From assembly GCA_964035545.1 (NCBI GenBank), contig OZ037772.1:10290818-10354817 (forward strand): DNA of 64,000 bases, written 5' to 3'. The DNA comes from Bugula neritina. Taxonomy: Eukaryota; Animalia; Bryozoa. Position 1 is the first letter of the stretch, and every line of letters starts with the position of its first letter. This document shows positions 10,661 to 64,000 of this stretch, one piece after another. The translations under genes were made by a program, and so were the position numbers. The notes beneath the pieces are model-generated. The model did no database searches and was not told where the DNA came from. It saw only the letters and a list, made by a program, of their open reading frames with translations.

Positions 10661-13600
10661 TCACTTCAACTGATAGAATTTGACTTGTCCATTAGAATAC
10701 CATACTGGAACTACTAGAGTTGAGCCAGTGATGTGGAGATCAGGTATGTATAAAATGTTTTCAGTTATAAATATCCTGGTTAGTAACTTGCCTGTTGAGA
10801 TAAAATACAAAATGTTCTTTTTTTAGGAATCAAAGATAATATAAAGAGAGTGCAGTTTATTTGCAGCAAATAACTATAAATATGAATGAACTCATTTCAT
10901 CATATTATAACACGTATATTTCATACACTATATGTATTCTACACAGTAACTAACCTGTATGTAATGATAGTACACAGAATGAGGTATGTTTAGTAACATC
11001 AGCCACAACTACAAACTCATCTCTATAGCAGGTCACTCCACGAGGTTTAGTCACATCCTTACACTGCCAGATGATGTCACCTGATGAGGTGTCTACTTTG
11101 TATACTAGAGATGAGTTATACTGAGATATAATAATTGAGTTGTTATCTGCAGCAGACAGACGTACAATAGTATCAGTGAATAGAGGACAAGGTAGAGTGT
11201 TTACTACCTCCCCATTCAGAGAGTAGAATACTAGAGTTTTATTCAGCCTGTCAGGAATAGCTATCTGATTGTTTATAATGGCAAGCTGATATATCCACAA
11301 GAGTTTATTATCTGTATGAGTCCAGCTGTTAATGGACCTCCCTTCAAGGTCATGAACTCTTACAGTTGAATCAGAAGACAGAGTATATATCCTATCATTA
11401 TGTACTGAGATACTCCTCACACTGCTACCTTTAATAGAGATGAATGATTTAGTAACTCTGTTGTTCTCATCTATCCTGTCTACACCTTCATCACACCCAG
11501 CATATGTGACACCTTTATAGGTGTGAACAGACCTGCAGTATGGAGAAACTTCAACAGCTTTTATCAGTTCTACAGGCCTGGGTGGTGGAGGTGAGAGAAC
11601 CAGTCCTTGTTCAGGAGTTATACTTGCTGTCCTTTCATTGGTCAGCTCAATCTCTGTATTTCTTTGCTCCTCTGTGATAAAAATATTGACGTGCATGACA
11701 TGGTAATATAATATAAAACAGCTGATACATCAGAAAAGCTAGCAGATAAGTGCATAGCTATAGCACACTGCAATGATCATGCACTTTTCATTTAAAAAAT
11801 TATTATTATAATTTTGGCTTTTTAAACCAGATTATTTTTATGGAAAGCTACTATTGAAAAAAGTTTACTGCGGAAAAAAATCAGCAGCTGCATTCATGTC
11901 AACAAATTATTAAAATCAATTCTAATGATATTCTATTTTAGTAATATACTACTATATTAAATTAGGTTATGTTCACCAAAAACTTGTACTAGTATTCTCC
12001 AAGAGTAAGCACAGCTATTGCACAAATGTGTAAATCTATAGAATAGTTGAGAGAAGCTTACAGATGGGGGATATGTAGGCCACTCCCTCCTCAGTGTAAA
12101 TTAAACACTAAAGATTCCCACTACCATTATTTACCTTACAACTTGGTTTAATAGTATATTCTAGGGGTGTAGTGTACGTGGTAATAATACAAACTCAGTT
12201 TTGGATAATAATATAGTGCCTTCATCATGGTAAATTAAAAGGTTATGTATGATGTATTCTCATAAATAATATTTTAATATTATTTATAAAAATACATTAG
12301 TAAAATACCAGATGATGAAAATGTAACAGTTTGAAACATAGCTATAGCTTACATACATATATACCCCAAATTCAAGTCAAAATATGATTACTTGATTATG
12401 TTATTTATATACAGGTAGATAAAACATGTCATAAAAAGGAACATTGTTTATAGTTCTATTCAATATCTTGTTTTAAAGTTTTTTACATGGAGAACATATA
12501 AAACCAACCTTTCACTTCCGCAGATGTTACAAGACCAAACCGTGTCAACTTAGGAATCTCTTCTGTCAGCAGTCTATCAATCTCCTTCTTCATATCACGA
12601 TATGACTTGATGATGTCAACCTAACAATATTATAATACAGACAATGTGACACTGTGTAGCAGGTGTTATAGAGTTGTCTGCTGTTAGAGAATGCCAGTGT
12701 TGAGTATGAACAATGAGATCAACAACAATGCTATATTTGACACACACAAAACCATCTAAAAAGCAGCAGTGCAATGCAAAATGTTGAAGAACAGAGAGTG
12801 CAATGCGGTATTAGAGAAACAGACATCTACAGACTAAGCCTTGGGCTGCAAAGTAGCAAAGGTGTCGACTGTAGCGTCAGTGATGCGTGATAAATAAAGC
12901 TTTCATTTTTAAATCGCACTCGCTTTCAATAGAACGCAATTTACTGGAATGTAGCACTAAATTAAAGAAATTGGGCTCGCTGAATAGCTACCAGCCAATT
13001 AGGTGACGATGGCAGAGACGATTCGCACTTGTTGCTCAGCATTTTCAACGCAAGTTCGAACGTTTTCTCAACACCTTTGCTACTTGTGATTTTAATTTTC
13101 GCGTGCGAAAATACGCACTGTGTGGCCCTAGGCTAATGGGTGTAGTTTATGCTAATAAACGGTACTCTTAAGGAACACAGATTTCAAATTTGACAGTGTG
13201 CTATATGGTATTAAATACAGTATCCTAATATAGTAATATAAAGTATGCTATAGCATTGTAAACTGTCCTATAGTAATATACAGCGTCATATTATGGTGTT
13301 ATACTAAAGCATCCTGCATACGTATTACACAGTATTCTATGGCATTATACAGTATTTCATAGTATTATACATGCAGTATTCTAGAGTACTATACAGTATT
13401 ATATATTATAGGTATCATGGTATTATTGTATTATACAGTATCCTACGGTATTATAATACAGTGTCATATCGTGTTAGTACCAGGTGTCAAACATTTTCAG
13501 ACTGAGGGCAACTGAAATAGAGTACTCTGATGACGGAGGCCACTCTGTAAAATTTAGCTTGAGCTGGGGTCATATTGACAGTATTTTCAAATTACTTCAT

Positions 13601-16185
13601 TTAAAATTTTTATAAATGTTAAACAATGAAGTCCCATTAACTCCTACAGGCTGCATGTTTTAGCACGTACACAAACAACATTTAAAAGGTAACTTTTCCA
13701 TTCTAATTCATATATATCTGAGCAAAACTAATTTATGTTTATGTCTTTGAGGGTGACATAAATATTGAACATGCAACCCTACGTTATACAGCATGATATG
13801 TTATAGTATAGTTTCATTACTGCCTTTACTGGTTATTACCTGATTCACCTCCTGTTCACACATTACCGTATAGGACATTGTAACGTAAAATCGCAGCCAT
13901 TATGACAAATGTCTGAGCTTCCTGCATGGTGCTACAGTACGTTAGGGTCAAGCACTGCTTGATTCAAACTAGTTGCGGCGGGTTCCTATTGGACAGAAAG
14001 ATTTTTGCGTCAGCTCATTGAATAAAATTGTCCAATGAGGTGTCTTATTATTTACCTAATAGCCGACTTAGTAAATTTCAACCGGGACACATTAAAGATA
14101 TCTGATATTATACATTACGACGTACGATACGGCAATGTGTGAACAGGGGGCCAGTTTCTACTTATGTAGTCTTTCGATGGTATTTATACAGATAAAGAGG
14201 CAGTGAATAAAGAAATTATATAAAGACATTAAAATATATAAACTGTTACAGATTTTAACATCTATGCTCTACGACTAACCTCATGACTTTGGTCTAATTT
14301 AGCCTCTATTTCTTCTCTGTGATGGTAAAGCTCACGGTATCTAAACCCCACCTCCTCTACCATGAAGTTCACTGCTTGACTCTCAGTCTTTTCTCTCTTC
14401 TCCACCAGTTCTTTCTCCAGTTTGTCATACTTCTGTTGAATAGCTGCTATCTAAATACAGTCACATTAAATGTTAGACAAGTTAGAAAAATTTGAGGAGT
14501 GTCTGAGTGTACAATCATCTTGCATCTACCAAAAAAATTATTTATCTCAGGTGGTTATACAGAAAACTATAAATAAACTCTCACAGTTTCTATATGATCT
14601 TTATAATTATCAAATTTAAAAACCATGCAATAATCACCTGATCATCACGCTGTTTACATAGCAACATCAGCAGCTTCTTGGTTTCAGTTCGAAACTCATC
14701 AATGTTTGCAGCTATCTGTTTGTAATAACCAGATAAGTCGTCTTCTCTTGTCTTCAACTTTGTGACTTCCACCAGCTGCATTGTTAAATCTTTCAATGTC
14801 AAGAGTGTATGCTGTGATGTACCTAAAGTAATATATACAAAGTAATGTATAAGCTGTTGTGTACCTGAATCATGTAATATATATAGCAAGTAAACAGAAG
14901 AATAGACACTTACCATCATCACATACACCAGCTGTAGGTACACACTGAGTACAGAGTAGTTTGAGACAGACTTTACAACCTAAAGTATACTCTACGTCTG
15001 CATGTGTCTCACACATTCTCTTCTCTAACTTAGCAGCACGAGCTTTGTATTCTGTCATATTAATTCTAGAATGTTCTTCAGACAGATTGTCATGATCCTA
15101 TTATAAATTATATATAATATGGAGTATATAGTTTGTCATTTACTATTGATATTATATATACAACATAATGTATACATTTCAATGGTTAAAATGTCATGAT
15201 GACATAGTAATGTATAAAACATATATGCAATGTTACATAATATTTTATGTAAAATAATATATACAAATATATTGTACCTACAATATATTTGTATATATAT
15301 AAAACCATATTGTACCTACAATATTATAATAACTACTATGGCAGACGTGGTAATGTATTGAAGGAATCTGTAGAGTTATGTCCCTTTGATTATAATGTCA
15401 TCCCACTTTATATTAAATTGCACCAGAGTACTTTTTCGTGAAATAAAAACCATCAACTGACTTTTCAGCAAAATTACAAGCAAAATCAAAAGCCAAATTA
15501 TTTTGCTACAAGACTGATGCTTACTCAAATTCAGCCAGTTATCAAATTATATGGCGATACAAGCAAGAGGCATGGACAAACACATAAACTAAGCATGGTT
15601 AAATTTACTTACAATGATATGCTTAGCACAAAATAGTTTGGCACAAACTAAACAATACATCAGAGCAGGTGTGTTATTTACTCCTGACTTTGTACAGACT
15701 GCACAGAGTACAGACTTATCTATCTGTTTCATCTGGTCTGCTGTTGGTAACTTATCAGGTGTTGTATTGAACACTTGCCTGTAACGTAAATAGATTAATT
15801 GTTGATACATCATTGACTAGCTATATAGTATATAAAGTAATTATATATAAAGGTTCATAGTGTAATGCTATCTCTTCTATAACCTAGTATAGCAATACAG
15901 GCACTACATATAGCATAAACACATAATTATAGTAAATAACATCATAATATTTATATTATTATGAACATTATTATAAAATATATAATAATATGTAACATAT
16001 TATTAAGTTATCATATTATTCACCTACCGACATATTCCACATTTAAGAGCTTTTAGCCTTCCATAGAATTCATTCAAACACCTGTCACAGTGTGGGTGAG
16101 TACAAGGCAATGCCTTACATTCTTCTAACTTGAGTTTAGATAAACAAATAGTACATCTTACCATTGGTTGTGGTTTAGATGCCAT
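10661..16185 (-). CDS. TRIM-like E3 ligase copy 1 (RING-HC, B-box1, B-box2, coiled coil, NHL-like beta-propeller), apparently intact, 607 aa
   Basis: Exons 16185-16028 (MASKPQPMVRCTIC...LPCTHPHCDRC...CGICR, C3HC4), 15778-15613 (CAVC...YCLVCAKLFCAKH), 15097-14914 (CETH...CKVCLKLLCTQC), 14822-14638, 14450-14280, 12620-12509, 11671-10955 (propeller; KPRGVT) and 10791-10661 (FYQLK, TGA). Total 1824 nt, with canonical splice sites and consistent phases. Confidence 0.9.
12838..13133. mobile_element. MITE with TAA target-site duplication (PIF/Harbinger/Tourist-like), intron of copy 1
   Basis: TAA|GCCTTGGGCTGCA...TGTGGCCCTAGGC|TAA; the paralogs show the empty site ACTAATGGG (e.g. 26757, 35450). Confidence 0.8.
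13848..14150. mobile_element. MITE with about 24-bp TIRs, intron of copy 1
   Basis: CCTCCTGTTCACACATTACCGTAT ... ATACGGCAATGTGTGAACAGGGGG, flanked by TCA/CCA. It is absent at the paralogous site (CCTGATTCATTTTCTAC at about 36177). Confidence 0.85.
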
Positions 16186-19345: not shown

Positions 19346-22300
19346 CATAATTATGAACACATTTATTGTAGAAATCAAGGAAATAAAAATTGTAAGTATG
19401 AGCAACTCTAAACCCTCAGCTGAAAGCTACAAAGCCAAATCTTAATAATTGAACTTTAAAAACAACTCATTACCTATAATTGCAGGAAACTGGAATATTC
19501 AATTATGGCGGAGTTATTAATTGACTCACTTTTTGTGTGTCCAATCGAAATAGTGGATCTCTTTTATAGGTGTATTATTAGCATTCATAGATATTATTTG
19601 CTAACTATTGAATGATGTTGATTTTTTCCCACCAATACAAGATAATATGACTTGATAGGTAAGCTCCCCCAAAGATCTTTATTATTTCTACTTTGGTATA
19701 GTATTACTAACATGTGACCATGCAGCTCCATAAAGTGTTGCTTCTATATGTTGAGTGAAAGTACATAAATATTGTAGATGATGTAACATACAGTGTTGAC
19801 TATTAAAGACAAAACATGGTTCCTAATAAATTTCTGTAACTACTCAGACTAGAGATGTTCCTATCCCACATCTTAAACAGCTCTGCCTACAATAATATAA
19901 AAAAGTAACTCTTCACAGGATACAACTTCAATTGCTAATAGCTATAATATGCTTTGTACAATGTTTACTAGTAGAGATGGAATTGGTTATTTAAGAGGTA
20001 CACAAAAAGTTATATTGAATCCTTAAATTTCATATCATATGATCTGCAGAGCTTGATATATAGCATGTCAGTTTGATTGTTGTTGCTGCATGGAATTTAG
20101 TTTGATTTTGTAAAAATGTTTTTAAAGAGTTTTGGTGAACGGAATGTGATGGTTGACAGAAACTTTATCTGGAACTTAGTATTTTGTGTGCAGCCGACAC
20201 TGTTTTGGCTTTATCTCTGATTTTATTATATAACATTTGAATTATAAGTACGGATAAATTACTAAAAAAGAATGTCTCTGTATGCCAATACTTAGTAGAT
20301 AAAAGTCGTTTTGCTTTTTCACCAAATGAAAGGTAGTTCAAGTTTGTAGAAATATCAGCTGCCATATCTTTTGTAGCGAGAGCTTTTTAGTGAATGCTTT
20401 AATTCCAGCTTATAATATCACTTAATAGTACACTGCATAATAAGATGGAAAAAGTAAGGCGAGTTAAGCTGCACTCAAATTATTAGTGGCTATAATCTCT
20501 ATAAGGAAAAAGCTTTTCACTTGCATTAAGATCCTTTGCACATCAGTTGAGAAAGAAGAACTTTTGCAGAGTAATAAAACAGTTTATACTAAATGAAAAT
20601 AGATGTGTGATAATTTCTAAAAGGTGATGGCAAAAAAGTTACAGAGTATTCAAAGTAAAACTAGATACAAGTTTGGATTTCTCTTTATTAGATGAAGAAT
20701 CAATTGCCAAATAAAAAGCAACATTATCTTTATCAAAGAAACTGCTTATTGTAAGGGAATAATGTGCTATTTCTTGCTACTGATTATAATTTCATACCAC
20801 AGCTGAAAACAGTTTCAAATCATACCATATCTGAATGCAACACAGCAATCTGTCCATATTATTAGCAAAATCTGATGCATTAGTAATTTCTAAGACAGCA
20901 AACATAAACACAGTTAATTGGGCTTGATAAAATTGCAAATAACAAAAGTTTAGTCAAGATAGAAAATAATAGGAAATTGAGTGAAAATTTTGCAAATTTA
21001 AAGTACATAATATATCTGTAGCCACCACCAATAAGATTATTATATAAAGTTTACATATTTGTAGAAATATATTGTGTATAATTGATATAACGCACAATAG
21101 CCTGGATTTTCCAGTATATAATGCACCAGTACAAGAACTTGAGTGATAATATTGAATGAAAGACACTACTTGTACTATATTGGCAGATCACGTGGTTATA
21201 GCCTGTCTAGTAGTCCACTGTAAAGTAGGAAGTTAAACATGCAGATGTCTATAGTGAAGGGAACTGACTTAGTTGACTCATTAAAGCAGTGATGTACTGG
21301 GAAGGTAACTCCTTATGTATGACTCAACATGTTGTGTTCTACAAAGCATAACAAAGATGTCTAGTATATACAATATCTGCCATGTTATAATAATATAATG
21401 CTATGAGACATTAGTATATACACTGTATTGTAAACCATTGCTTTATAATTTAACTATTGATTGGTAACTAATCAGGGGAGATAACTGGTAATAATGTGCA
21501 CACTAATAGTTAACCAACAATATTATTATAATACTATAGAGAGTCATGATACTTCTATGCAATAAAATGCAATGCAACACACAATATTATACAACAAGAT
21601 GCAATGTAAAACTATTCAATACAAAGCAGCATTAGCAAGATGAATTAGAAAGGCACTCAGTACCTCTCACAACATTTACTAACCTTTATTAGAGTATCCC
21701 AGTCATTTAGTTCACATTCACTTCAGCTGGTAGAACTTGACTTGTCCATTATAAGAGCATGCTGGAACTACTAGAGTAGAGCCAGTGACGTGGAGATCAG
21801 GTATATAAGTATATTCAACTGTAGATATCCTGGTTAGTAACTTGCCTGTTGAGATAAAAGACATAATGTTCTTTTTTAGGAATTAAAGATAATATAAAGA
21901 GAGTGCAGTTTATTTGTAGCAAATAACTAAATATGAATGAACTCATTTCATCATATTATAACACATATATTTCATACACTATATGTATTCTACACAGTAA
22001 CTAACCTGTATGTAATGATAGTACACGGAGTGTGTTAGGTTCAGCATCATCAGCCACAAGTACAAACTCATCTCTATAGCAGGTTACTCCATAAGGTTTA
22101 GCCACTTCCTTACACTGCCAGATGATGTCACCTGATGAGGTGTCTACTCTGTATACTAGAGATGAGTGAAGCTGAAATATAATGATTGAGTTGCTATCTG
22201 CAGCAGACAGACATACAGCAGTATCAGTAAGTAGAGGACAGGGTAGACTGTTTACTACCTCCCCATTCAGAGAGTAGAATACTAGAGTTTTTTTCAGCCT

Positions 22301-22802
22301 GTCAGGAATAGCTATCTGGTTGTTTATGATGGCAAGCTGATTTAGCCACTTTGATTTATTATCTGTATGAGTCCAGCTGGTGATGAATCTCCCTTTAAGG
22401 TCATGAACTCTTACAGTTGAATCAAAAGACAGAGTATATATCCTATCATTATGTACTGAGATACTCGTCACATTGCTACCTTTAATAGAGATGAATGATT
22501 TAGTTACTTTGTTGTTCTCATCTATCCTGTCTACACCTCCATTACACCCAGCATATGTGACACCTTTATAGGTGTGAACAGAAAAGCAGCCCAGAGAAAC
22601 TGTAACAACTTTTATCAGTTTTACAGACTTGGGTAGTGGAGGTGAGACAACCAGTCCTTGTTCAGGAGTTATCCTTGCTCTCTTTTCATTGGTCAACTCA
22701 ATCTCTGTATCTCTTTTCTCTTCTGTAATAAAATATTAACACACATGACAGGGTAATATAATATAAAACAGCTGATACATCAGAAAAACTAGCAGATATA
22801 TA

Positions 22803-25341
22803 CACAGTTAGTTTAAGGTCATTACTTTCCAGATTCATGCACTGCTTTATGTTATATATAAACGGTTTCCAGGGGATAGCTCGAACAGTTTTTGTCTCAC
22901 ATTAACAAATTTTACATGAAAAGATAGCTCTTGCATTCCTCTTTCATATACTTTTTTAATTTTTCAATAAAAAATTTTCTGAGAAAGTTGTTGCATAATA
23001 AGTAAAATTTTACACCCTCCATGTTCCACTGCTGTAGCACAGGGGATTCATTTTATAAAGTCTAAAAGTTAAACTTGACATTCCTTGATATGTTTTCTCT
23101 AATATACTTTCTTTGTTTTTTGAAATTCTGTTTATGCTCTTCACAATTTGTTAAAAACATACACCATTTTGCAAGTTTCACTGCAATTTTCTAAATTCTT
23201 CATATGGTGGTTCTAGCTACGCTCCTGTGACTAATTATAACATTCCTAGTACGTTTGCCGCTCTGCGCTATCACAATAACATATAGTACCCTCTCGCACA
23301 AATTGGCAATCTATTGGATTTCTGCCAATATAATGTTCCCTGTTTTACATTAGCACTTAGCTGAATCATCTCACTATGTTACAATAATATATTGAAAATG
23401 CCTCAGCACAACATAATTCTTTGTTTGTTTGGCAGAGTTAATTTCAGCTAAATCACTTCACTTTGCAGTCTTGTCAGTAAAGGTCTGTCTATAGCGCAGC
23501 AGGTGTATACTTTCAGTTTCTCTAATTCACATATGATTATTTTAAGTACATTGTATTCTATAAGATCAATTTAAGGTTTAGTCTAGTGTTCAGTATCTAA
23601 TTATTATGCATGTATGTTGTCTTACTGTTGAAAAAAAGTTAAAAAAAAACTTTACAATTATAGCCATATTTATTATACATGCGTGGGATTTGCATAAGTT
23701 GACAAAAAAAATTGCAACATAACAGGGTTGAACCATGACCAACCAACACGTCGCTGACGCCTCTAACCTCTGGACCACGCAGTCATCGTTAATGGAACGC
23801 GCACTATTTGAGTCACTATCATTACATAAATATTTCGCGCGCAAATGGGTTATAATTATTAGGCTGTCAATTCATGTTGATAGCAGTCAAAGCAAATGGT
23901 TTTGAACAAATAACCCAAAAGTTTAAAAATAAGTAGCTTGCGTATTACTAGCTACAAAAACAGGTCTGAAATAGACTGGTAAAGCAAGCTCTTATTGTAG
24001 AGTTTGCAGATGTGCTCTAAAATAAAACTTAAACTGTATGCTATTACATAAGTATTTGTATGCGAGAGATAAATGGACATTACTGAGTTTCTGGAAAACA
24101 ACATACTTGAAGTTAACTTTGACAATGGTGTGTTATTTTCATCATAGCTAGCCTATAGCATAAATCTCTAATCATATGAATCTTTATGAAGCCCACAGCT
24201 CATGTAAGGGTGGCAATGTAATTTGAAATGAACAATTATGTTGCTGCATTGTGTCTAAGGTATATTAGAGAGCAGAATTTCGTTTTACTAGCCTACCCCA
24301 ACGGCATTCTACAATGCAGCTTATATGCTGGCAGTTGTAATAAGTACTGCCAATAGCAAGGTTACTATCACTGCTAGCTCTGTGCAGCATGTAACCTCTT
24401 GAATAATTGCGCCAATTTTAAACTCTTGGAAGTTGGCCAAGTTATCATATCGCAGCCAGCCACCGGAGACAAAGCATCAGAGCTATTCATATAATATTAT
24501 ACTGATGCACTTGGTAGCAGAGTGGCTAATCTAATATAGTTCATAGTTCAACACCCTTTACTTTGGGAATACAGCCTCTTTTTTTAGGTTTACCTAACAA
24601 AGCATGAAAATATCTAAACTGATATTCTGATAATTTAGAGGTACATTTTGAAAACTAGGTTAATTGCACTTGCTTGCGCAACAACAATAATAAAATAGAT
24701 ATTATGCAGTATAATAAAAACACACATAATACTATATAATATATTATAATGATAATAATATAATATTATAAGTACCATTACTGCATTTTATAAATCACAT
24801 GGTTGCCAAAAAAATGTATCACAAATTTTGTAATTATACATCAAAAAGAGAACTAGCTAGGCAGCAGGTTAGAATAGAGTAAATTTTTAAAACATGAAAT
24901 CATGATTTGACTATTGTTTTATTTAGGCCAACCAACCTAGGAATACAAGATTGGGTTTTAGCTGACAGTTTATAACATTTAGCTTTTGAGCCAGCAGCAC
25001 TGGCACTTGTGAAGTATAGGCAAAGTTAGTGAAGCGAGACTAATAAGCACTCAAATACAAGGCATATTATTGAGACACAATAACAAGTCAGGAGCGTATA
25101 AATTGAATAGAATGTGGAAGGGGGACTATGTTTTTCAACAAGCTATAACTTAAACATGAATTGGCTTTTGAAAAAAATAAAAAAGTATATTGGAGAACAT
25201 AAGTTTCTTTATCTTTTCATATTTTTTTTGTTCCTGTGACATTCAACCTGTTCGAGCTATCAGTGGAACATTGTTCATATAGAACATAAAGCACCTGGCA
25301 AAGAGCCAGAAAATGAAAAGTATGACCTTAAACCAACTGTG
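22803..25341. mobile_element. 2.54-kb non-autonomous TIR DNA transposon, TA target-site duplication, in the intron before the propeller exon of copy 2
   Basis: TA|CACAGTTAGTTTAAGGTCA ... TGACCTTAAACCAACTGTG|TA with further subterminal inverted similarity (GATAGCTCGAACAG). The empty site AGCAGGTATATAAACATAC is at about 34326; a second, inverted copy is at 40593-43155. No long ORF. Confidence 0.93.
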
Positions 25342-25913
25342 TAAACATACATGTATATTGTGGTGCATCACTACACAAACAGCAGTGCTATAGCAGCACT
25401 GCAATGACCGTGCACTTTTCATTTAAAAAATTATTATTACAATTTTGCTTTCCATACCAGATTATTTTTATGGGAATCAACTATTAAAAAAATTTAAAAA
25501 ATCAGCAGCTCCCTTCATGTCAACAAAATATTAAAATCAGTTCTAATGATATTCTATTTAGTGATATACTACTATATTAAATTAGGTTATGTTCATCAAA
25601 AACTTGTATTAGTATTCTCCAAGAGTAAGCACAGCTATTGCACAAGTGTGTAAATCTATAGAATAGTTGAGAGAAGTATACAGATTGGGGGAGATGTAGG
25701 CCACTTCCTCCTCAGTGTAAATTAAATACTAAAGATTCCCACTAACATTATTTAATTCAAAACTTGGTGTAATAGTATATTGTAGGGATGTAGTGTGGCA
25801 ATAGTATAAACCCAGTTTTGGAAAATATCATTATATAGTAATGCTTTCATCATGTTAAATTAAACTATTATGTATAATGTATTTTTATAAGACAAATATA
25901 TAAAGTGAAATAC

Positions 25914-26201
25914 TAGTCAAACGCACTAACTCCTAAACTGAGGCTGCTCCTAAAAATATATGTCCTCGCTTAGGGCATATTTCTGAGAGCAGCCGTAGTC
26001 TATGAGTTAGATCGATTGCTCAGTAAGCACAAAGTCAAGGATTCGAGCCCGGGCAAAGGCCATTGGTGATGTTAGAAAGAGCATCCAGTCATAATTGCTC
26101 CTGTGCCTCATTTAAATAAGTCTTTAGCCCTCTTTAACAAAAACCTCAGGGGTTTCTCACAGAGATGGTGACTATAGACTTGCAAGAGTTTTTTTATATT
26201 G
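25914..26201 (+). mobile_element. tRNA-derived SINE insertion (MetaSINE-like central block), specific to copy 2
   Basis: Head GAGCAGCC...GGATTCGAGCCC followed by GGCCATTGGTGATGTTAGAAAGAGCATCCAGTCATAATTGCTCC. It is flanked by the direct repeat AGTGAAATAC and homologous to 43770-43970. The Meta-domain resemblance is from memory and unverified. Confidence 0.75.
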
Positions 26202-29200
26202 AGTGAAATACCAAACGAGGAAAATGAAAATGAAAATGTAACAATTAGCAACATATAGCTTACATACATAATATACCCGAAATCTAAAGGTCAAAATATA
26301 CTTCCGTGATGATGTTATAATTTAAATACGACAAGACATAACAAAATGTCATAAAATGACCATTTATTATAGTTCTATTCAATATGTTGTTTTAAATAAT
26401 TTTGCATGGATAACATATAAAACCAACCTTTGATTTTAACTGATGTTACAAAATCAAAATCCATTAACTTAGGAATCTCTTCTGTCAACAGTCTATCAAT
26501 CTCCTTCTTCATATCACGATATGACTTGATGATGTCAACCTAACAATTATACATATACATACAATGTGACACTGTGTATAGCAGGTGCTTGGGAGTTGTC
26601 TGCTTATATTATCGAGCATGTCAGGGTTGAGTATGGACAATGTGATCAACAACAATGCTGTATTTGACACCAACAAAATAATCTAAAAAGCAGGGCAATG
26701 CAAAATATTGAAGGATAGAGATTGCAATGCAGTATAAGGGAAACAGACTTCTACAAACTAATGGGTAAAGTTTACACTAATAAACTGCGCCCTAAGAAAG
26801 CACAGATTTCAAATTTGACAGTGTGCTATATGGTATTAAATACAGCATCCTAATATAGTATTATAAAATATTATCCTATAGTATATTGTGAAGTGTCCTA
26901 TACGATTATACACTATACTGTATCATATGGTATTAACTATTATACTGCAGCATCCTACAGTAGTTTACAGTATTCTATGGTATTATACAGTAACGTATAG
27001 TATTATATAATGTCCTATAGTACTATATACGGTATCCTATGATATTATAAGTATTAATTAGGGTATTATTGTATTATACAGTATCCTATATATTATAATA
27101 CAGTGTCATATAGCGTTATAGTACCGGGTGTCAAACCTTTTCAGACCGAGGGCAAATGAAGTGAAATATTCTATAATGAGAACGACCAGTCTGTTAAACT
27201 TAGCTTGAACTGTGAACACAGTGACAGTATTTTTTTAATTGCTTCATTCAAAATTCTTATAAATCATTACACAATGAAGTCCTATTAACTAATACAGGCT
27301 GTATATGTTTTAGCAATGTATACAAAAAGATATTTAATTAAGGGTGTTTTTCCACTTTAATTAGTATATCTGAGCAAAAAAATTTGCTTTATGTCTTTTA
27401 GGGTGGCATAAATGTTGGACAGCCCTATATTGTAGTAGTCCCATTATTGGTCATTACCTGATCCATTTTCTACTTATATAATCTTTCGATGTTATTTACA
27501 GATAGAGAAACAATAAATATATAAATTATAAAAAGACACTGAAATATTACATAAAATTGCTACAGATCCAAACATCTACTATCCATACTCTACAACTAAC
27601 CTCATGACTTTGGTCTAACTTAGCCCCTATTCCTGTTCTGTGATTATACAGCTCACGGTATCTAACCCCAACTTCCTCTACCATGAAATTCACTGCTCGA
27701 CTCTCAGTAGTTTCTCTCTTCTCCACCAGTTCTTTCTCTAGTTCGTCATACTTCTGTTGAATAGCTGCTATCTAAATACAGTCACAATAAATGTTAGACA
27801 AGCTAGAAAAATTTGGAGAGTGTCTGAGTGTATAACTGCATCTTGCATCTATAACCAAAAAGTAGCTTATCTCAGATGATTATAAAAAAGCTATAAACAA
27901 ACTCTCACAGTTTCTATATGATCTTTATAATTATGAAATTTAAAAACCATGTAATAATCACCTGGTCATCACGCTGTTTCCATAGCAACATCAGCAGCTT
28001 CTTGGTTTCAGTTCGAAACTCATCAATGTTTGCAGCTATCTTTTGTAATATCCAGATAAGTTGTCTTCTCTTGTCTTCAACTTTGTGACTTCCACCAGCT
28101 GCATTGTTAAATCTTTCAATGTCAAGAGTGTGTGCTGTGATGTACCTGAAGTAATATATACAAAGTAATGTATAAGCTGTTGTGTACCTGAATCATGTAA
28201 TATATATATAGCAAGTAAACAGAAGAATAGACACTTACCATCGACACATACCCCAGCTGTAGATACACACTGGGTACAGAGTAGTTTGAGACAGACTTTA
28301 CAACCCAAAATATACTCTACGTCTGCATGTGTCTCACACATTCTCCTCTCTAACTTAGCAGCGCGAGCTATATACTCTGTCATATTTATTCTAGAATGTT
28401 CTTCGGCCAGATTGTCATGGTCCTAAGACAAATATATACAAAAGAGTTTGTGGCTTACTAACGATATTACATCTAAGATTGCATATAATATACATTATAA
28501 TGGTCCTAATGTCATAATCTTATACTGCGTAAAGTATATATGCAATGCTATATGATATACTTTGAATAATACTAAAAACTATACGCCGTGCAATTTATAG
28601 TGGAATAGAATCATGAATGCAACAAGTAAATCATGAGAGTTATGACCCCTTAATCATATATTTTATCCAGGGTATTCCAAATTACAGCATAATGTATGCT
28701 AATCGATATTTGCTAAACTCTGAAAGCATAAAACCCAATCCATATGAAGAAATGAGTGGAAATAAGTGAATTATTTCGCTTGATCAATGAATTCAAATAT
28801 TGTGGATTTTGTATTGTGTAATTATTAAATTTTTTCTCTGTGAAATAACACCAAAATCCGAATATATTTGGATTTTCGGTAATTTGGCTACCCCAATCTA
28901 TCTATACAAAATATAAGGGTACATTCACAGATAACACAATAAATATTTTTAACTGATGGTGGCTAATTTACTCCAGAGTCTATAATAGACAAATAAAACT
29001 ACATTTGCACACGGCTAAAAATTACAGAGTGTTAACTTACAATGACATGTTTAGCACAGTACAGTTTGGAACAAACTAAACAATACATCAGAGCAGGTGT
29101 ATTATTCACTCCTGACTTTGTGCAAACTTCACAGAGTATAGACTTATCTGTCTTTTTCATCTGGTCTGCTGTTGGCAACTTATCAGGTGTGGTATTGAAT

Positions 29201-47585: not shown

Positions 47586-50500
47586 TCACTTCCACTTCAG
47601 CTGATAGAAATCGACAGATGACCCAAATACACCGCGGCTAAACATGACTAGAGTAGAGTCAGTGACGTGTATATCAGAACTGTAGTCAATAGGCATCCGG
47701 GTTAGTAACGTCCCTGGAAATATGATACACATATATTTTAGAAATATGATGGACATTTGTTGTAGAAATTAAACCAATAAATTATATAAGTTGTGGAGTT
47801 GAGTGATATCAAGCAAAAATATTCAAAAACTAATTGTAGTGAATTCTAATGTGTGTATAACATGAGTATATGCATTTTTAATTATAGATAGTGTAATTCA
47901 ATGGTACTATATAAGTTAACACGAATCAAATCATTACATTGAATTGCAATGTGTGTATGTATTATGCATGCTATCTACACAACCTGTATGTAATAATAGT
48001 ACGCAGAGTGCGGTAGGTTTAGTATTGTCGGCCACAAGTACAAAATTTTCTTGATAGAAGGTCACTCCACGAGGCTTAGCCACTTCCTTACACTGCCAGA
48101 TGACGTCACCTGATGAGGTGTCTACTTTGTATACTAGAGATGAGTCACACTGAGATATAATAATTGAGTTGTTATCTGCAGCAGACAGACGTACAGGAGT
48201 GTCAGTCAGTAGAGGACAGGGTAAAGTGTTTACTACCTCCCCATTCAGAGAGTTATAGAAGACTAGAGTTTTATCCAGCCTATTGGGAATAGTTATCTGA
48301 TTATTTACAGTGACATGCTGATTTGAATTGTTTATGTTATCTATATGAGTCCAGCTGGTGATGAACCTTCCTTCAAGGTCATGAACTCTTACAGTAGAAT
48401 CAGTAGATAAAGTATATATCCTATCATTATGTACTGAGATACTCCACACAGTACTACCCTTAATAGAGATGAATGATTTAGTTACTTTGGTGTTCTCATC
48501 TATCCTGTCTACACCTCCACTACACCCAGCATATGTGATACCTTCATAGATGTGAACAGACATGCAGAATGGAGAAACCTCAACAGTGTTTATCAGTTCT
48601 ACAGACTTGGGTGGTGGAGGTGAGACAACTAGTCCTTGTTCAGGAGTTATACTTGCAATTCTTACATTGGTCAGTGCAGTCTCTGTATCTCTTTTCTCTC
48701 CTGTAATAAAAATATTGACATGTATGATACTGTAATAAAATATAAAAACAGCTGATACATCAGAAAAACTAGCAGATATGTAAACATATACATGTATATC
48801 TTTGTGTATCACTATTCACAAACAGCATTGCTGTAGCAACACTGCCATGATTATACACTCTCTATTTAAAAATTGATATTATAATTTTGGTTTTTAGACC
48901 AGATTATTCTAATGAGAATCAACTATATTGAAGAAGGTGTACTGCCGAAAAAATCAGCAGCCGCATTGATTTCAACAAATTATTAAAATCAATTCTAATG
49001 ATATTCTATTTAGTGATATACTACAATATTAAATTAGGTTATGTTCACAAAAACTTGTATTTGTATTCTCCAAGAGTAAGCACAGCTATTGCACAAATGT
49101 GTAAATCTAAGAAGTAGTTGAGAGAAGCTTACAGATTGAGGGAGATATGAGCCACTCCAGCCTCTTAGTGTAAACCAGACACTAAAGATTTCCACTATTA
49201 TTATTTACCTTAAAACTTGGTTTAATAGGATATAGGGGTGTAGTGTGGCAATAATAAAAACTCAGTTTTCGAAAATAATAGTGCTTTCATTGTGTTTAAT
49301 TAAAATATTATTTATAATGTATTTTTATAACACAGATCAATAGAGTGAAATACCAGATGAAGAAAATGTAACAGTTTGAAACATAGGTATAGCTTACATA
49401 CATATACCTCAAATTCAAAAGTCAAACTATACTTACTTGATCATGTCACTTAAACACAGCTAGATAAAAAATGTCATAAAAATGAACAACGTTTATAGTT
49501 CTATTCAATATCTTGTTTTAAATAATTTTGCATGGATAACATATAAAACTGACCTTTGATTCCCACTGATGCTACAAGATCAAACTCTATCAACTTAGGA
49601 ATCTCTTCTGTCAACAGTCTATCAATCTCCTTCTTCATATCACCATATGACTTGATAATGTCAACCTATCAATATTATATATCCAGACAATGTGGCACTG
49701 TGTAGCAGGTGTTTGGGAGTTGTGTGCTATTATAGAGAATGCCAGTGTTGAGTATGAACAATGAGATTAACAACAATGCTGTATTTGACACCAACAAAAC
49801 CATCTAAAAAGCAGCATTGCAATGCAAGAGATTGCAGGAGCGAGAGTAAAAAGCACAATTGCAAACAGAAAGTTTTTACAAACTAATGGGCAATGTAACA
49901 GTTTTTAGTTACTTTACAGCCCATGTTTACATTTTTCCTATTACATTTTTATATAGTGACTCAAGGCAATTGCAATTTGCTGGTAGAAGCTGGGAACTTG
50001 TTGGGGCCATTGGGGTCAATGGGGAAGTTTAGGTGACCAATGGGAACAGTGCAAATTGTCTTCTATTATCTCACTGCGGCCATGCTTTGTCAAGAAAACT
50101 GGTTCCTGGGCAGTAGGGTATTTTTAGCCATTAAAATATGATGTGCTAGCATGATATTCATGCATGTGTTTTATAGCTATATTTTTACACTTCATTCATT
50201 AATCAGAAGTCAGTCTAAGGCTAAAGGAGAACAAAAGGTTGCTATACTCTTTTGTACTTTTCTAGTAAATGTTTTGTAATCTCTTGTGATTTGTTTTGTA
50301 ATTAACTGTGCTGAGTTAATAGGCTGTAATACATTTTGTCTTTGTCATGTTTCATACTATATACATTATATTATATATTACATACATTATATTATATATG
50401 GGTCATTTTACCTAATTTAGTACACACTGGATATTTTCAGTTTTTAGCTATTTTTCACAAATTAGCTGGTAATGAACATTGGTTTTTGCCTAAAACTAGT

Positions 50501-53500
50501 AAAGCACCAATCAATACACCGAAACAATTAAGGTTCTTCTTAATTTTGCTTGATTACCCATGTTTTTTTTATATATTTAGCTTATTAGGAGTGCGAACCG
50601 TTACGAAAAAACTGTAACGGTCCGTAACCAAAAGTAGCTGATTAATTAGAAAACAACATGGGAAATGAAGCAAAATTAAAAAGAACTTTGATTATTTAGG
50701 TGTATTTATTGGTGTTTTATTAGTTTTAGCTAAAAAAATCATGTCCATTAGCAGTTAAATTGTGAAAAATAGTTAAAAACTGAAAATATCCAGTGTGTAC
50801 TAAATTAAGTAAAATGACCCATATCACATTATTCACATTACTCAATCATTCTGTATTCAAATTATAATGCTTACGATAATTACAGACTTTATGGTGTTGG
50901 TTTATGAGTTAAAGTGTTAACGGTCTGTAAAGCTGGTGAACTAGAATAAACTATAATAATACCAACTTTCACCTGTTCCATCTAACTACATTCATAAAGG
51001 CATCAGTAAAGTTTAGTCATCTAAGTAAGCTTGCAAGAGTGCTTAGCAGACAGGTAAACTGTTAACCTAATTATATGCGTTGTCCAATGCTACTATATAA
51101 TAAAGTATCTGCAGTGCTTCATGATACTATAAACTGTAGTTGCATTGCCCTATATGATATTATATAGCATCACGCAGTTTATTGCTCTCATTCGTCTGTT
51201 TTTCAAGTTACTTATAGCTCAATAATCTTTAGTCTAAATGATGCATCTGTTGTCTTTCACAGGTATCAATTTGATGTTTCTATCTTTTTCCTGGCTTTCA
51301 GAATAATGAAATTGGCCCACTGTGCCCAGATACCAGGGTACAATGGGCCTTTGCAAAAATGTGTCATCTTCTGCATGCATGCTGAGAAGCTCACAACCAT
51401 CCTCCTTTTACGAGGCAGGAATACATGCTCTCATGAAACGATGGACAGCAGCTGTGGACAATAGAGGAGACTATATTGAGAAATAAAGTGTGTTCCTAAG
51501 TTGTTGCTGATCATTTTGATATATAGTTTAAGTATTCAGAAAATAAAAATTCTCTGATCTTACACAACAGGCGTTACTTTTTGAACTACCCTTGTATATA
51601 AAACTGAAAAACATTACATCGCCAAACTGCCACAGATACACACAGTCTAACATCTACGACCCAACCTCTGCAACTAACCTCATGACTTTGGTCTAACTGA
51701 GCCTCTATTCCAGTTCTGTGATTATACAGCTCACAATATTTAGCCCCTACTTCCTCTACCATAAAGTTCACCGCTTGACTCTCAGTCTTTTCTCTCTTCT
51801 CCACCAGTTCTTTCTCCAGTTCGTCATACTTCTGTTGAATAGCTGCTATCTAAATACATTTACATCAAACATAAGACAAGATAGAATGTTTTGATCAAAG
51901 TGGCTGAGTGTATAACTATGTTGTATCTACTAAAAAGTATATTTTCTCAGTTCAGTATAAAGAGAATTATAAACAGACTCTCACATGCAGTTCTTTTATA
52001 TGATCTTTATATAATTATGAAACTAAAAGATTATATAATAGTCACCTGATCATCACGCTGTTTCCATAGCAACACCAGCAAATTCTTGGTTTCAGTTCGA
52101 AACTCATCAATGTTTGCAGCTATCTGTTTGTAATAACTAGATAAGTTGTCTTCTCTTGTTTTTAACTTTGTGACTTCCACCAGCTGCATTGTTAAATCTT
52201 TCAATGTCAAGAGTGTGTGTTGTGATGTACCTGAAGTATATACAAAGTAATGTATAAGCTGATGTGTACCTGGATCATGTAATATATTATTATATAGCAA
52301 GTAAACAAAACAAATAGACACTTACCATCGTCACATACATAAGCTGTAGATTCACACTGAATACAGAATAGCTTGAGACAGACTTTACAACCCAAAGTAT
52401 ACTCTACGTCTGCATGTGTCTCACACGTTTTCTTCTTTAATTTAGCAGCACGAGCTTTATACTCTGTCATATTTATTCTACAATGTTCCTCGGCCAGATT
52501 GTCATGATCCTGAAATAAATATATATAGAGTAGTACGCATTTTACTAATGATATTGTATATTAGATTGCATGTACACATTATAATAGCCTAAATGTCATG
52601 ATCTCATACTGCGTAAAGTATATATGCAATGCTATGTGATATATTTCGAATAATACTAAAAACTATACTGAGCAATATAGTGCAATATAGAATCATGAAT
52701 ACAACAAGTAAGTCATGAGATTTATGTCCCTTGATCATATATTTTATCCAGAGTATACTAAATTACAGCATGATGTATGCTAATCGATATATGCTAAAAC
52801 CTAAATGCACAAAACTAATTCATAAAGGTAAATGAGTGGAAATAAGTGAATTCTTTCGCTTGATCAATGGATTCAAATATTGTGGATTTTGTATTGTGAA
52901 ATTATTAAATTATTTCTCTGTGAAATAACACAAAAATCCGAATATACCTGGTTTTCTGGCAATTTGGCTACCCCAATCTATCTATACAAAATATAAGGAT
53001 ACATACACAGAAAACACAATAAATATTGTTAACTGATGGTGGCTAATTTACTTTAGAGTCTATAGACAAATAAAACTACATGTGCACACATGCGCATAAA
53101 AACGCACAGCTAAAAACTACAGAATGTTAACTTACAATGATATGCTTAGCACAGTACAGTTTGGAACAAACTAAACAGTACACCAGAGCAGGTGTATCAT
53201 TCACTCCTGACTTTGTACAGACTCCACAGAGTATAGACTTGTCTATCTGTTTCATTTGGTCTGCTGTTGGTAATTTATCAGGTGTTGTGTTGAACACTTG
53301 TCTGTAACATAAATGGTGAATTTATTGTTGATTCATCATTGACAAGCTATATAGTATATAAAGTAAATATATATAAAGGTCCATAGTGTAATGCTATCTG
53401 TTCTATAACCTGGTATAGCAATACAGGTACTACATAGCAGAAACACATATATTATAGTAAATATAGCATCATGATATTTATATCATTATAAACGTTATTA

Positions 53501-53712
53501 TGAAATATTTAATATAATGTAACATATTATTTTGTTATGATACTATTCACCTACCGACATATTCCACATTTAAGAGCTTTTAGCCTTCCATAGAATTCAT
53601 TCAAACACTTGTCACAGTGTGGGTGAGTACAAGGTAATGCCTTACATTCCTCTAACTTCAGTTTAGATAAACAAATAGTACATCTTACCATTTGTTGTGG
53701 TTTAGATGCCAT
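47586..53712 (-). CDS. TRIM-like E3 ligase copy 4, apparently intact, with a divergent terminal exon
   Basis: Exons 53712-53555, 53301-53136, 52509-52326, 52230-52046, 51849-51679, 49665-49554, 48700-47984 and 47713-47586 (ends FYQLKWK, TGA). Exon lengths and phases match the paralogs. Confidence 0.88.
50400..50820. mobile_element. 421-bp foldback MITE, nearly fully palindromic, flanked by ATAT
   Basis: ATAT|GGGTCATTTTACCTAATTTAGTACACACTGGATATTTTCAG ... CTGAAAATATCCAGTGTGTACTAAATTAAGTAAAATGACCC|ATAT; the inverted arms extend about 170 bp or more. Confidence 0.9.
51180..51350. mobile_element. Left-end fragment of the 1.3-kb G-tailed MITE family
   Basis: TGCTCTCATTCGTCTGTTTTTCAAGTTAC...TTTCAGAATAATGAAATT...GGGTACAATGGGCC matches 38390-38570. 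Confidence 0.75.
51375..51594 (+). mobile_element. Mariner transposon 3' remnant (transposase C-terminus and right TIR)
   Basis: Translates LRSSQPSSFYEAGIHALMKRWTAAVDNRGDYIEK-stop (51486), the typical mariner FY..GI..L..RW......G.Y.EK ending. It is followed by the TIR-like GCGTTACTTTTTGAACTACCCTTG|TA. Confidence 0.85.
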
Positions 53713-57810: not shown

Positions 57811-57947
57811 TATAATCTACAATGTAACAATATGATGCAATTCAATATAACACTATATGCAAAGTGATACTACAAATACATAAAAGGGGAAATATTGCAG
57901 CAAAAATTACTGACCATTTTTAGAGTGTCCAGTCTATTAGATCACTT

Positions 57948-60564: not shown

Positions 60565-63500
60565 TCACTTCAGCTGATAAAATTTAACTTGTTTATTAGA
60601 AGACCAAACTGGAACTACTAGAGTAGAGCCAGTGAGGTGTAGATCAGGTATGAAACTGTTTTCAATAGATATCCTGGTTAGTAACTTGCCTGTTGAGATA
60701 AAAGACATAATGTTCTTTTTTTAGGAATCAAAGATAATATAAAGGAAATATATAAATATGAATGAACTAATTTCATCAAATAATAATATGCATGCATATC
60801 ATACACTTGGTATATTCTACACAGTAACTAACCTGTATGTAATGATAGTACACAGAGTGTGTTAGGTATAGTATCATCAGCCACAAATACAAACTCATCT
60901 CTATAGCAGGTCACTCCACAAGGTCTAGCCACTTCCTCGCACTGCCATATGATGTCACCTGATGAGGTGTCTACTTTGTATACTAGAGATGAGTGAAGCT
61001 GAGATATAATAATTGAGTTGTTATCTGCAGCAGACAGACGTACAAGAGCATCAGTAAGTAGAGGACAGAGTAAAGTGTTTTCTACCTCCCCATTCAGAGA
61101 GTAGACTACCAGAGTCTTATTCAGCCTGTCAGAAATAGCTATCTGATTGTTTATGATGACAAGCTGGTTTATCCGCTTCGATTTATCTGTATGAGTCCAG
61201 CTATTGATAGACTTTCCTTTAAGGTCATGAACTCTTACAGTAGAGCCAGTAGATAGAGTATATATCCTATCATTATGTACTGAGATACCCATCACATTAC
61301 CACCTTTAATAGAAATGAACGATTTAGTTACTTTGTTGTTCTCATCTATCTTGTCTACACCTCCATAACACCCAGCATATGTGATGCCTCTATAGGTGTG
61401 AACAGACATACTGCAGTATTGAGAAACTTTAATAGCTTTTATTAGTTCTACAGACTTGGGTGGTGGAGGTGAGAGAACTAGTCCTTGTTCAGGAGTTATA
61501 CTTGCTGCCCTTTCATTGGTCAGCTCAATCTCTATATTTCTTTTCTCTCCTGTAATAAAATATTGACATGCATGACATAGTAATATAATATAAAACAGCT
61601 GATACATCAGAAAAACTAGCAGATAAGTACACATACATGCATATCTTTGTGCACCACTACAAAAACCAGCAGTGCTATAGCAGCACTGCAATGATCATGC
61701 ACTTTCCATTTGAAAATTTATATTATAACTTTGGCTTTTTAGACCAGATTATTTTTATGGGAATCAACTATTGAAAAAAATTTACTGCAGAAGAAAATCA
61801 GCAGCTGCGTTCATGTCAACAAATTATTAAAGTCAATTCTAATGATATTCTATTTTAGTGATATACTACTATATTAAATTAGTTTATGTTCACCAACAAC
61901 TTGTATTAGTATTCTCCAAGAGTAAGCACAACTATTGCACAAGTGTGTAAATCTACAATGTAGTTGAGAGAAGCTTACAGATTGGGGGAGATGTAGGCCA
62001 CTCGCCCTTTCAGTGTAAATTAAACACTAAAGATCCCCACTACCATTATTTACCTTATAACTTAGTTTAATAGGATATTGTAGGGGTGTAGTGTGGCAAT
62101 AATACAAACCCAGTTTTTGAAAATAATAGTGCCTTCACCATGTTAATTTAAAACATTATTTATAATGTGTTTTTATAACACAGATCAATAGAGTGAAATA
62201 CAAGTTCATGAAAATGTAACAGTTTAAAACATAGGTATAGCTTACATACATATATACCTCAAATTCAAAAGTCAAAAAATAATTACTTAATTATGTTACT
62301 TGAATACAGCTAGATAAAAAGTGTCATAAAAGTGAACAACGTTTATAGTTCTATTCAATATCTTGTTTCAGGTAGTTTTGCATATTAATAACATAAAACT
62401 GACCTTTAACATCTATAAAACTGACCTTTGAGCTCCACAGATGTTACAAGATCAAAATGTGCCAACCTAGGAACCTCTTCTGTCAACAGTCTATCAATCT
62501 CCTTCTTCATATCACGATATGACTTGATGATGTCAACCTAACAGTATCATATATAATACAGATATTGTGACATTATGTAACAGGTGTTTGGAAGGTATAT
62601 AGTTATAGTTATGGAGAATGGCAGTGCTGAGAATGAACAATGAAATCAACAACAATTCTATATTTGACACCAACAAAACCATCTAAAAACAGCAGTGCAA
62701 TGCAAAATATTGAAGGATAGAGATTGCTATGCTGTATTAGGGAAACAGACTATACTGCCAACTATAAATGGGTAAGGTTTATTCTAATAAACTGTACCTT
62801 AAGGGAGCACAGATTTCAAAGCTGACGCTAATGTGCAGTGGGCTATGCTATTAAATACAGTATACTATAAATATAGCATTATACAGTATCATATAGTATT
62901 ATACTGCAGTATTCTATGATACTATACAATATTCTATGGTATTATACAATATCATATAGTGTTGCGTAGTGTCCTATGGTACTATACAGTATGCTATGAT
63001 ATTAAGAGTACTATGGTATTATTGTATTATACAGTATCTTACGGTATTATAATGCAGTGTCATATAGTGTTAGTACACTGGGTACCTTGCAGACCGACAG
63101 CAAATAAAATGGAATACTCTGGTGACTGGAGGCCACTCTGTAAAACTTAACTTGGGCTGAGCCACAATGACAGCATTTTTCAAATTACTTCATTCCAAAT
63201 TGTTATAAATCATTACACAATGAAGTCCCATTAACTACTCCAGGCTGCATGTTTTAGCATGTACACAAAGATACATGTATTTAAAAAGTATTTTTTCCAC
63301 TCTAATTTATATATCTGATCGAGCAACATAATTTTATGTTTATGCCTTTGAGGGTGGCATAAATGTTGGACAGTCCTGTGTTATACAGCATGATATGTTA
63401 TAGTACAGTTCCATTACTGCCTTTATTGGTTATTACCTAATTCATTTTCTACTTATGTACTCTTTAGATGTTATTTACAGATAGAGAAACAATGAATATA

Positions 63501-64000
63501 GAATTTATATAAAGACATTGAAATATATAAAAATTCTACAGATCTTAACATCTACTATATATGCTCTACAACTAACCTCATGACTTTGGTCTAACTTAGC
63601 CTCTATTCCTGTTCTGTGATTATACAGCTCACAATATCTAGCCCCAACTTCCTCTACCATGAAATTCACTGCTCGACTCTCAGTCTTTTCTCTCTTCTCC
63701 ACCAGTTCTTTCTCCAGTTTGTCATACTTCTGTTGAATAGCTGCTATCTAAATACATTCACATTAAATGTTAGACAAGTTAGAATAGTTTGAGGAGTGTC
63801 TGAGTGTATAACCATCTTGCATCTACCAAAAAGGTAGCTTATCTCAGATGATTATAAAAAAAGCTATAAACAAACTCTCACAGTTTCTATATGATCTTTA
63901 TAATTATGAAATTTAAAAACCATGTGTAATAATCACCTGATCATCACGCTGTTTACATAGCATCCCCAGTAGCTTCTCGGTTTCAGCTCTAAACTCATCA
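60565..64000 (-). CDS. TRIM-like copy 5, 3' part (coiled coil and propeller); the 5' end is beyond the window
   Basis: Exons 64000-63937 (partial), 63747-63577, 62537-62426, 61549-60833 and 60689-60565 (FYQLK, TGA); all are open. Confidence 0.85.

Follow-up and report, generated by a model that had tools for sequence, protein, structure and literature searches.

Probable diversifying selection on the propeller face of a large bryozoan family of TRIM-type ligase genes

Five tandem paralogs are encoded on the minus strand of a 64,000-nt stretch of the genome of the bryozoan Bugula neritina (GCA_964035545.1, contig OZ037772.1, positions 10,290,818 to 10,354,817), here called the window. They occupy positions 10661-64000 with a spacing of 11-14 kb. 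Each gene follows a plan of 8 exons and about 607 codons, encoding a RING, two B-boxes, a putative coiled coil and a six-bladed propeller, the last on exons 7 and 8. The five genes are almost certainly members of a large bryozoan gene family of TRIM-type E3 ligases with this fold. Diversifying selection very probably acts on the top face of the propeller. A recognition repertoire is the fairly likely meaning of this pattern. A first-pass annotation, made from the letters of the window, had described five tandem paralogs with shared core motifs and recurring variable spots; that description holds as stated.

Probable diversifying selection on the propeller

Exons 7 and 8 from 30 close paralogs were used in the selection tests. 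Pairwise ratios of nonsynonymous to synonymous divergence (dN/dS, Nei-Gojobori) were 0.65 for exon 7 and 0.81 for exon 8. Codon likelihoods were calculated in-house (GY94, F3x4) by pruning on the IQ-TREE topology. For exon 7, the one-ratio model M0 gave an omega of 0.73. The log-likelihood (lnL) rose from -7932.7 under M1a to -7735.9 under M2a, twice the difference (2dlnL) being 394, and M2a placed 8.2% of the sites at an omega of 5.8. Eighteen exon 7 sites reached a posterior above 0.9 for omega >1. Sixteen of these lie in top loops and two at strand ends, compared with none of the 33 bottom-loop and none of the 36 linker positions (Fisher p 1e-9). M2a was likewise favoured for exon 8 (2dlnL 54), with selected sites in the loop before blade 6 and in the B-C loop of blade 6.

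The same partition emerged from pairwise rates. Four site classes were fixed before the rates were inspected, with strand boundaries taken from the structure model. The top loops (D-to-A and B-to-C) showed a dN/dS of 1.30 over 435 pairs and 1.19 over 15 independent pairs (bootstrap 0.91-1.6). The corresponding values were 0.41 and 0.44 for the strands, 0.37 and 0.34 for the bottom loops (A-to-B and C-to-D), and 0.58 and 0.80 for the linker. Top and bottom segments are both loops in the model, and the variation is on one face alone as the predicted strands place it. Variable columns hold 6-13 different residues across the 30 paralogs while adjacent columns are invariant, and the pattern is therefore not due to chance. 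Invariant Cys, Val or Pro residues adjoin the variable sites, at which aromatic (24.7 vs 9.0%) and basic (17.4 vs 8.2%) residues are overrepresented. In relatives at about 40% identity, variability is again highest in these columns.

The first-pass annotation had proposed that the variable residues lie on the top-face loops and that a codon test would give omega >1 at them. Both proposals are borne out, the second by the in-house M1a/M2a comparison and by a split-sample check. Sites picked in one half of the paralogs had a dN/dS of 2.11 and 1.59 in the other half, versus 0.49 and 0.54 elsewhere. Three observations had been named that would speak against the proposal: dN/dS not above 1, scattered or buried variable sites, and uniform divergence. 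None of them was made.

An omega above 1 may also arise as an artefact, if gene conversion homogenises the core while the loops escape it, or if the loops are mutational hot spots or misaligned and relaxed constraint is misread. Several features of the data would suit such an origin. The paralog tree is star-like and weakly supported, with internal branches making up 8.5% of its length. Synonymous divergence of the exons (0.15-0.19) is not above that of introns and flanks (medians 0.17-0.22 over independent pairs, means 0.24-0.32) and by most measures lies below it. Synonymous divergence (pS) is somewhat raised at the selected sites (0.25-0.30), and several loops contain indels. However, a pairwise homoplasy index (PHI) test found no signal of recombination (p 0.83), and loop shuffling is therefore not claimed. 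Three segments analysed with their own trees gave 2dlnL values of 150, 130 and 106 and selected essentially the same sites. A grid with site-specific synonymous rates still gave a 2dlnL of 157; as its maximum-likelihood weights are overfit (42% of the mass at beta > alpha), only strong sites were used. The excess thus persists under variable synonymous rates as well as under cross-validation. At 0.41, nonsynonymous divergence (pN) of the selected sites is higher than the divergence of introns and flanks in the same pairs (medians 0.17-0.22, means 0.24-0.29). Invariant Cys, Val and Pro stand between the hypervariable neighbours in ungapped columns, and the bottom loops, equally devoid of secondary structure, are as conserved as the strands. 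An artefact of this kind is considered very unlikely.

Neutral decay of a redundant array was weighed as well. Under this scenario, the duplicates drift and the variable spots are merely unconstrained. A frameshift in copy 2, a broken RING exon in copy 3, exon 8 relics with stops between the genes, and a few family members with stops would fit it. About 76 nonsense changes are expected under neutrality from the roughly 2,600 substitutions on the tree, yet none occurs in the exon 7 copies, all 30 of which are open. The dN/dS of N-terminal exons, strands and bottom loops is 0.25-0.44, splice sites are conserved, and transcripts are spliced. Neutral drift cannot reach an omega well above 1. As an account of the variable sites, decay is barely tenable; for the family as a whole, it is already contradicted.

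Domain architecture and fold

The RING and B-box exons (B-box1 and B-box2) named in the first-pass annotation are present, and exons 4-6 are taken as the coiled coil. Exon 1 matches the Pfam models zf-RING_5, zf-RING_2 and zf-C3HC4 with E values of 1e-3 to 8e-3 (best 1.2e-3). Exon 2 matches an ANCHR-like B-box (E 1.9e-3), and exon 3 matches zf-B_box (E 1.7e-4) with 22.1 bits versus a cut-off of 24.1. Full-length relatives match RING models and zf-B_box. All of these B-box matches fall slightly short of the curated cut-offs. The roughly 155 residues of exons 4-6 include many charged and heptad-like ones. Pfam identified nothing else there, and the coiled coil was assigned from composition. No filamin/Ig domain between coiled coil and propeller was found in Pfam scans of window exons and full-length relatives. 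The exon translations contain neither a signal peptide nor a membrane segment; the protein begins directly with the RING.

These N-terminal exons had been called nearly identical among the copies, which overstates the case. DNA identity is 89-97% and protein identity 72-96%, while the propeller exon shows 87-90% DNA identity. Exons 1-6 of the window copies have a dN/dS of 0.25 at a pS of about 0.19, the same synonymous divergence as in the propeller exon. The difference between the two parts of the gene is therefore attributed to purifying selection on the N-terminal exons.

The C-terminal domain is a propeller, and no Pfam match to SPRY was obtained. The Pfam NHL model (PF01436) also gave no match in the five window exons or in six full-length relatives, where only weak generic propeller models were hit. 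A profile built from 137 family sequences matched the Brat NHL domain with an E value of 2.4e-10. Brat, TRIM3, Thin, TRIM2 and TRIM71 came first among solved structures, with E values up to 1.9e-7. The complete propeller was modelled from the database relative P0072:335-626, and exon 7 alone was modelled for copy 1. The AlphaFold model of the P0072 propeller has a predicted local distance difference test score (pLDDT) of 92.3 and shows 24 strands in six blades, with an N-terminal strand completing blade 6. The blades are short, about 40 residues each, and the propeller comprises about 250 aa.

In a structure comparison of the P0072 model with 48,161 chains, the top five matches were Brat (Z 28.0), Mei-P26 (27.3), TRIM2 (26.9), Lin41 (26.0) and TRIM71 (25.8). 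The root-mean-square deviation of these five TRIM-NHL matches was 2.2-2.4 over 236-247 residues (VIA-align). Other six-bladed propellers followed closely at Z values of 25 or below, and the fold alone is therefore not decisive for NHL. With the exon-7-only model, NHL and WD40 propellers were indistinguishable by Foldseek. Profile match, modelled fold and TRIM architecture together make a divergent NHL domain the best assignment, although not that of a textbook member. The earlier label TRIM-NHL-like thus stands on profile and fold, while the Pfam NHL model is not reached. The top surface of an NHL domain is defined by its D-A and B-C loops and binds the ligand; in Brat, it is the face that contacts RNA and Pumilio and is rich in basic and aromatic side chains (PMC4015489).

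The apparent stop after exon 7 doubles as a consensus splice donor (CAG|GTTAGT). Nearly all of 30 paralogous loci keep the donor GTTAGT and, about 160 nt further on, a YAG|G acceptor; the propeller therefore runs on into an eighth exon. Strand D of blade 5 and the greater part of blade 6 are encoded by this exon 8 of 128 nt. Its sequence falls into at least two types, distinguished by how long the B-C loop of blade 6 is. A longer loop rich in Ser and Gly closes the second type, which occurs in copy 4 (47586-47713) and at loci L022, L025, L028 and L029, in no obvious agreement with the exon 7 tree.

Family size and distribution

The five-gene array is a sample of a much larger family. In the 216-Mb genome, at least 151 sites match exon 7 of copy 1, and almost every one is an open frame. 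About 36 close paralogs with 69-85% protein identity form two clusters on contig C8, one at 5.42-5.79 Mb (plus strand) and one at 9.96-10.36 Mb (mostly minus strand). The clusters are about 4.7 Mb apart and mostly opposite in orientation. More than 100 further matches at about 40% identity form arrays on other contigs. The nearest relative of a gene often sits in the other C8 cluster; copy 1 pairs with locus L006 at 5.59 Mb (98% support).

All named database relatives are proteins of 560-660 aa from the bryozoan Watersipora subatra, some labelled TRIM2-like. Exon-sized open reading frames (ORFs) of the same subfamily were found in metagenomes of the Joint Genome Institute (JGI). About 50 are exon-7-like (P0001-P0052), with up to 84% identity to copy 1, the only one of the 30 paralogs to which they were compared. 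This ceiling indicates either a sibling species or strain, or a gene content that differs strongly between individuals.

Transcription

Contigs from four runs of four studies cover the exons, and most intron bins are empty in the three smaller runs. The runs are presumed to be RNA; exon-only cover and canonical joints are the pattern expected of spliced RNA. The joints E1-E2, E2-E3, E3-E4, E4-E5 and E5-E6 were seen with GT..AG ends on the gene strand, and one contig of 481 nt spans E1-E2-E3. The joints E6-E7 and E7-E8 were not recovered among the short contigs of the four runs. Contigs that deviate from the window by 1-5% may come from alleles or very close paralogs. Expression therefore holds for copy 1 or very close alleles or paralogs, not gene by gene.

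Proposed function and alternatives

We infer E3 activity, ligand binding by the top face and an immune purpose for these proteins. The RING would recruit an E2 enzyme, and the coiled coil would form an antiparallel dimer as in other TRIMs. A short linker leads to a compact six-bladed NHL-type propeller closed by the N-terminal strand. Purifying selection acts on the half with the ligase and scaffold, and also on the strands and bottom-face loops of the propeller. In the D-to-A and B-to-C loops of all six blades, by contrast, about 20-25 residues are very probably changed by diversifying selection and small in-frame indels. With the ligase chassis unchanged, each paralog may then expose a binding surface of its own. 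Taken together, the paralogs would make up a germline-encoded repertoire of modules for substrate recognition, in which tandem duplication adds members and gene loss removes them. Such turnover agrees with the exon 8 relics and with the damage in copies 2 and 3. The likeliest use would be recognition, inside the cell, of fast-evolving non-self such as viruses, mobile elements or intracellular microbes, with restriction or signalling through ubiquitin as the consequence. The explanation as a whole, a repertoire of TRIM-type ligases with a diversified top face that likely serves non-self recognition, is favoured on balance. An immune role taken by itself is possible, though short of probable, and its basis is analogy.

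Several points weigh against this explanation. Two of the five window copies, 2 and 3, are damaged. The RING and B-box matches fall under the Pfam cut-offs when the exons are scanned singly. The codon-likelihood code is in-house, neither PAML nor HyPhy, and has no terms for gene conversion or multi-nucleotide changes. Faces were assigned by strand topology from DSSP strings of the model, not from coordinates. The bootstrap interval of the whole top-loop class over independent pairs (0.91-1.6) spans 1. Many contigs differ by 1-5% from the window, and their runs are presumed RNA.

The repertoire might instead serve endogenous or social ends. It could control many host mRNAs post-transcriptionally, as Brat or LIN-41 do, take part in conflict within the germline or over reproduction, or let colonies tell self from non-self. 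Canonical TRIM-NHL proteins regulate RNA during development, and variable sites biased towards basic and aromatic residues are suited to binding RNA. Named relatives come solely from a bryozoan, and bryozoans are colonial (PMC13326412). The present data contain no tie between the family and infection. Housekeeping RNA regulators, however, are single-copy and slow-evolving (group 1 TRIMs, PMC2533329). An arms race is the better match for a family of at least 150 copies that shows gene turnover and an omega of about 5 at positions of contact type. Direct allorecognition at the cell surface is a poor fit to a RING-first protein with neither signal peptide nor membrane segment. Endogenous or social use is therefore regarded as rather unlikely, and non-self recognition is retained as the preferred reading.

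A narrower form of non-self recognition is conceivable, in which the family is a germline library of RNA readers, each specific for a sequence or shape and joined to a ubiquitin ligase. Its top face would have been diversified over more than 100 paralogs for viral or transposon RNA inside the cell. RNA is bound by the NHL top face in Mei-P26 and LIN-41. The same holds for Brat (PMC4015489). This variant is improbable. If true, it would amount to innate recognition of nucleic acids by a type of repertoire that is not known from any animal.

Comparison with known systems

The TRIM-NHL proteins (Brat, Mei-P26, LIN-41/TRIM71, TRIM2, TRIM3, TRIM32/Thin and NHL-2) have the order RING, B-boxes, coiled coil and six-bladed propeller, which the bryozoan genes follow with a putative coiled coil. 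They are the best profile and fold matches of the bryozoan family, and their top face is likewise built from D-A and B-C loops (PMC4015489). Canonical members number few per genome (3 in flies, 4 in C. elegans; PMC4015489) and are conserved and developmental, whereas the bryozoan family has at least 150 exon matches, a tandem arrangement and a hypervariable top. Its blades are short and do not satisfy the Pfam NHL model, and it has no detected filamin/Ig domain.

In TRIM5alpha, TRIM22 and the fish finTRIM proteins, positive selection falls mainly on surface loops of the recognition domain at the C-terminus. Their E3 and coiled-coil half is conserved, as is the corresponding half of the bryozoan proteins. 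Like the bryozoan family, these ligases are clustered, lineage-specific and fast-evolving (PMC2533329). Clustered TRIMs with a positively selected recognition domain are already known from the vertebrate SPRY TRIMs. Group 2 TRIMs use a B30.2/SPRY domain while the bryozoan family has an NHL-type propeller; it resembles them in its workings and is not a member. Group 2 TRIMs have been reported absent from invertebrates, and NHL TRIMs are placed in the conserved group 1 (PMC2533329). The antiviral role of TRIM5alpha is demonstrated, while that of the bryozoan family is suggested by likeness. Of the earlier proposal, an E3 family with a diversifying substrate face comparable to SPRY-type restriction factors, selection on the face is supported; the words antiviral and immune still express an analogy.

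Sea-urchin and bivalve Toll-like receptors (TLRs) and the scavenger receptor cysteine-rich (SRCR) families of sponges and sea urchins have likewise undergone large expansions in tandem and vary at their recognition surfaces, in hosts that lack adaptive immunity. The TLR and SRCR families are mostly membrane-bound or secreted, whereas the bryozoan proteins are predicted to be cytosolic, with recognition joined to a ubiquitin ligase. Literature searches aimed at this family yielded no description of it. In a paper on immune gene expansion in oysters, TRIM occurs only inside the word "trimAl". We know of no immune receptors described for bryozoans.

In the textbook division, NHL TRIMs are slow and developmental, and the fast, clustered, pathogen-driven TRIMs are the SPRY proteins of vertebrates (PMC2533329). 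In the bryozoan family, an invertebrate would have reached the same evolutionary solution, a constant ligase chassis with a hypervariable surface, by means of a different recognition domain. The family is a candidate for intracellular non-self recognition in Bryozoa. It also represents a natural experiment on re-specifying the face of a six-bladed propeller, with bearing on NHL-RNA recognition and on the engineering of propeller binders.

Gene models and minor features of the window

The window has a G+C content of about 32%, and its genes are intron-bearing (Table 1).

Table 1. Gene models of the five TRIM-type paralogs (E, exon; AF2, AlphaFold 2; positions refer to the window)
Feature	Position	Strand	Basis or remark
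Copy 1, intact, 8 exons, 607 codons	10661..16185	minus	Exon frames; E1-E2 to E5-E6 joints in presumed RNA contigs, 2-4 runs each
Copy 1 E1, RING	16028-16185	minus	Full C3HC4 spacing in translation
Copy 1 E2, B-box1	15613-15778	minus	
Copy 1 E3, B-box2	14914-15097	minus	
Copy 1 E4, putative coiled coil	14638-14822	minus	
Copy 1 E5, putative coiled coil	14280-14450	minus	
Copy 1 E6, putative coiled coil	12509-12620	minus	
Copy 1 E7, linker, N-terminal closing strand, blades 1-4, blade 5 strands A-C	10955-11671	minus	AF2 model, pLDDT 90.3
Copy 1 E8, blade 5 strand D, blade 6 strands A-C, stop codon	10661-10791	minus	Conserved splice sites; six-blade model of relative
Copy 2, all 8 exons with canonical splice sites, frameshifted	21718..29724	minus	E7 22006-22722; E8 21718-21845
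Copy 3, exons 2-8 intact	33257..37748	minus	E7 33538-34257; E8 33257-33384
Copy 3 RING-exon relic	43156..43287	minus	132 of 158 nt left; last Cys pair and donor gone; 5.4 kb upstream of exon 2
Copy 4, intact	47586..53712	minus	E7 47984-48700; E8 47586-47713, divergent type
Copy 5, exons 8 to 4 inside window, all exons intact	60565..64000	minus	E7 60833-61549; E8 60565-60689

In copy 2, a DNA alignment identified a 1-bp deletion in exon 4 near 28041-28042, which leads to an in-frame TAG at about 28036-28038. Barring an assembly error, this copy is a probable pseudogene. Between the RING relic of copy 3 and its exon 2, the 5.4 kb at 37750-43150 contain no ORFs of 70 aa or more. Intron 1 of copy 3 was probably disrupted here by an insertion or rearrangement. 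The exon 7 donor of copy 4 carries a 4-bp insertion and reads GTTGTG. Exon 4 of copy 5 extends to 64121, and its exons 3 to 1 follow at 64215-65450 (extended coordinates), beyond the window end.

The in-frame indels listed in the first-pass annotation are real and were seen in copies 3, 4 and 5. Copy 5 has three extra nucleotides ahead of blade 1, copy 4 has three within blade 3, and copy 3 has three within blade 5; copies 4 and 5 each lack three before blade 3. Intergenic relics of exon 8 and its 3' flank were observed at 19171-19306 and 57901-58076, upstream of copies 1 and 4. With 75-78% DNA identity and in-frame stops, they are what partial duplications have left behind.

Intron 6 of copy 1 contains a repeat of about 290 bp (12850-13140) with inverted ends of about 65 bp, resembling a miniature inverted-repeat transposable element. 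At least 40 scored copies with 88-93% identity occur on many contigs (860 candidates at first look), and contig depth over it is very high in all four runs. A search of the window against Rfam gave no match, this repeat included. A long TA-rich microsatellite at 46266-46565 reads as Ile-Tyr repeats in two frames, and a tandem repeat at 7170-7607 gives a low-complexity ORF of 145 aa; neither has the look of coding sequence. Upstream of the array, the minus strand carries a Ser/Asn/Lys-rich ORF of 207 aa at 5375-5998.

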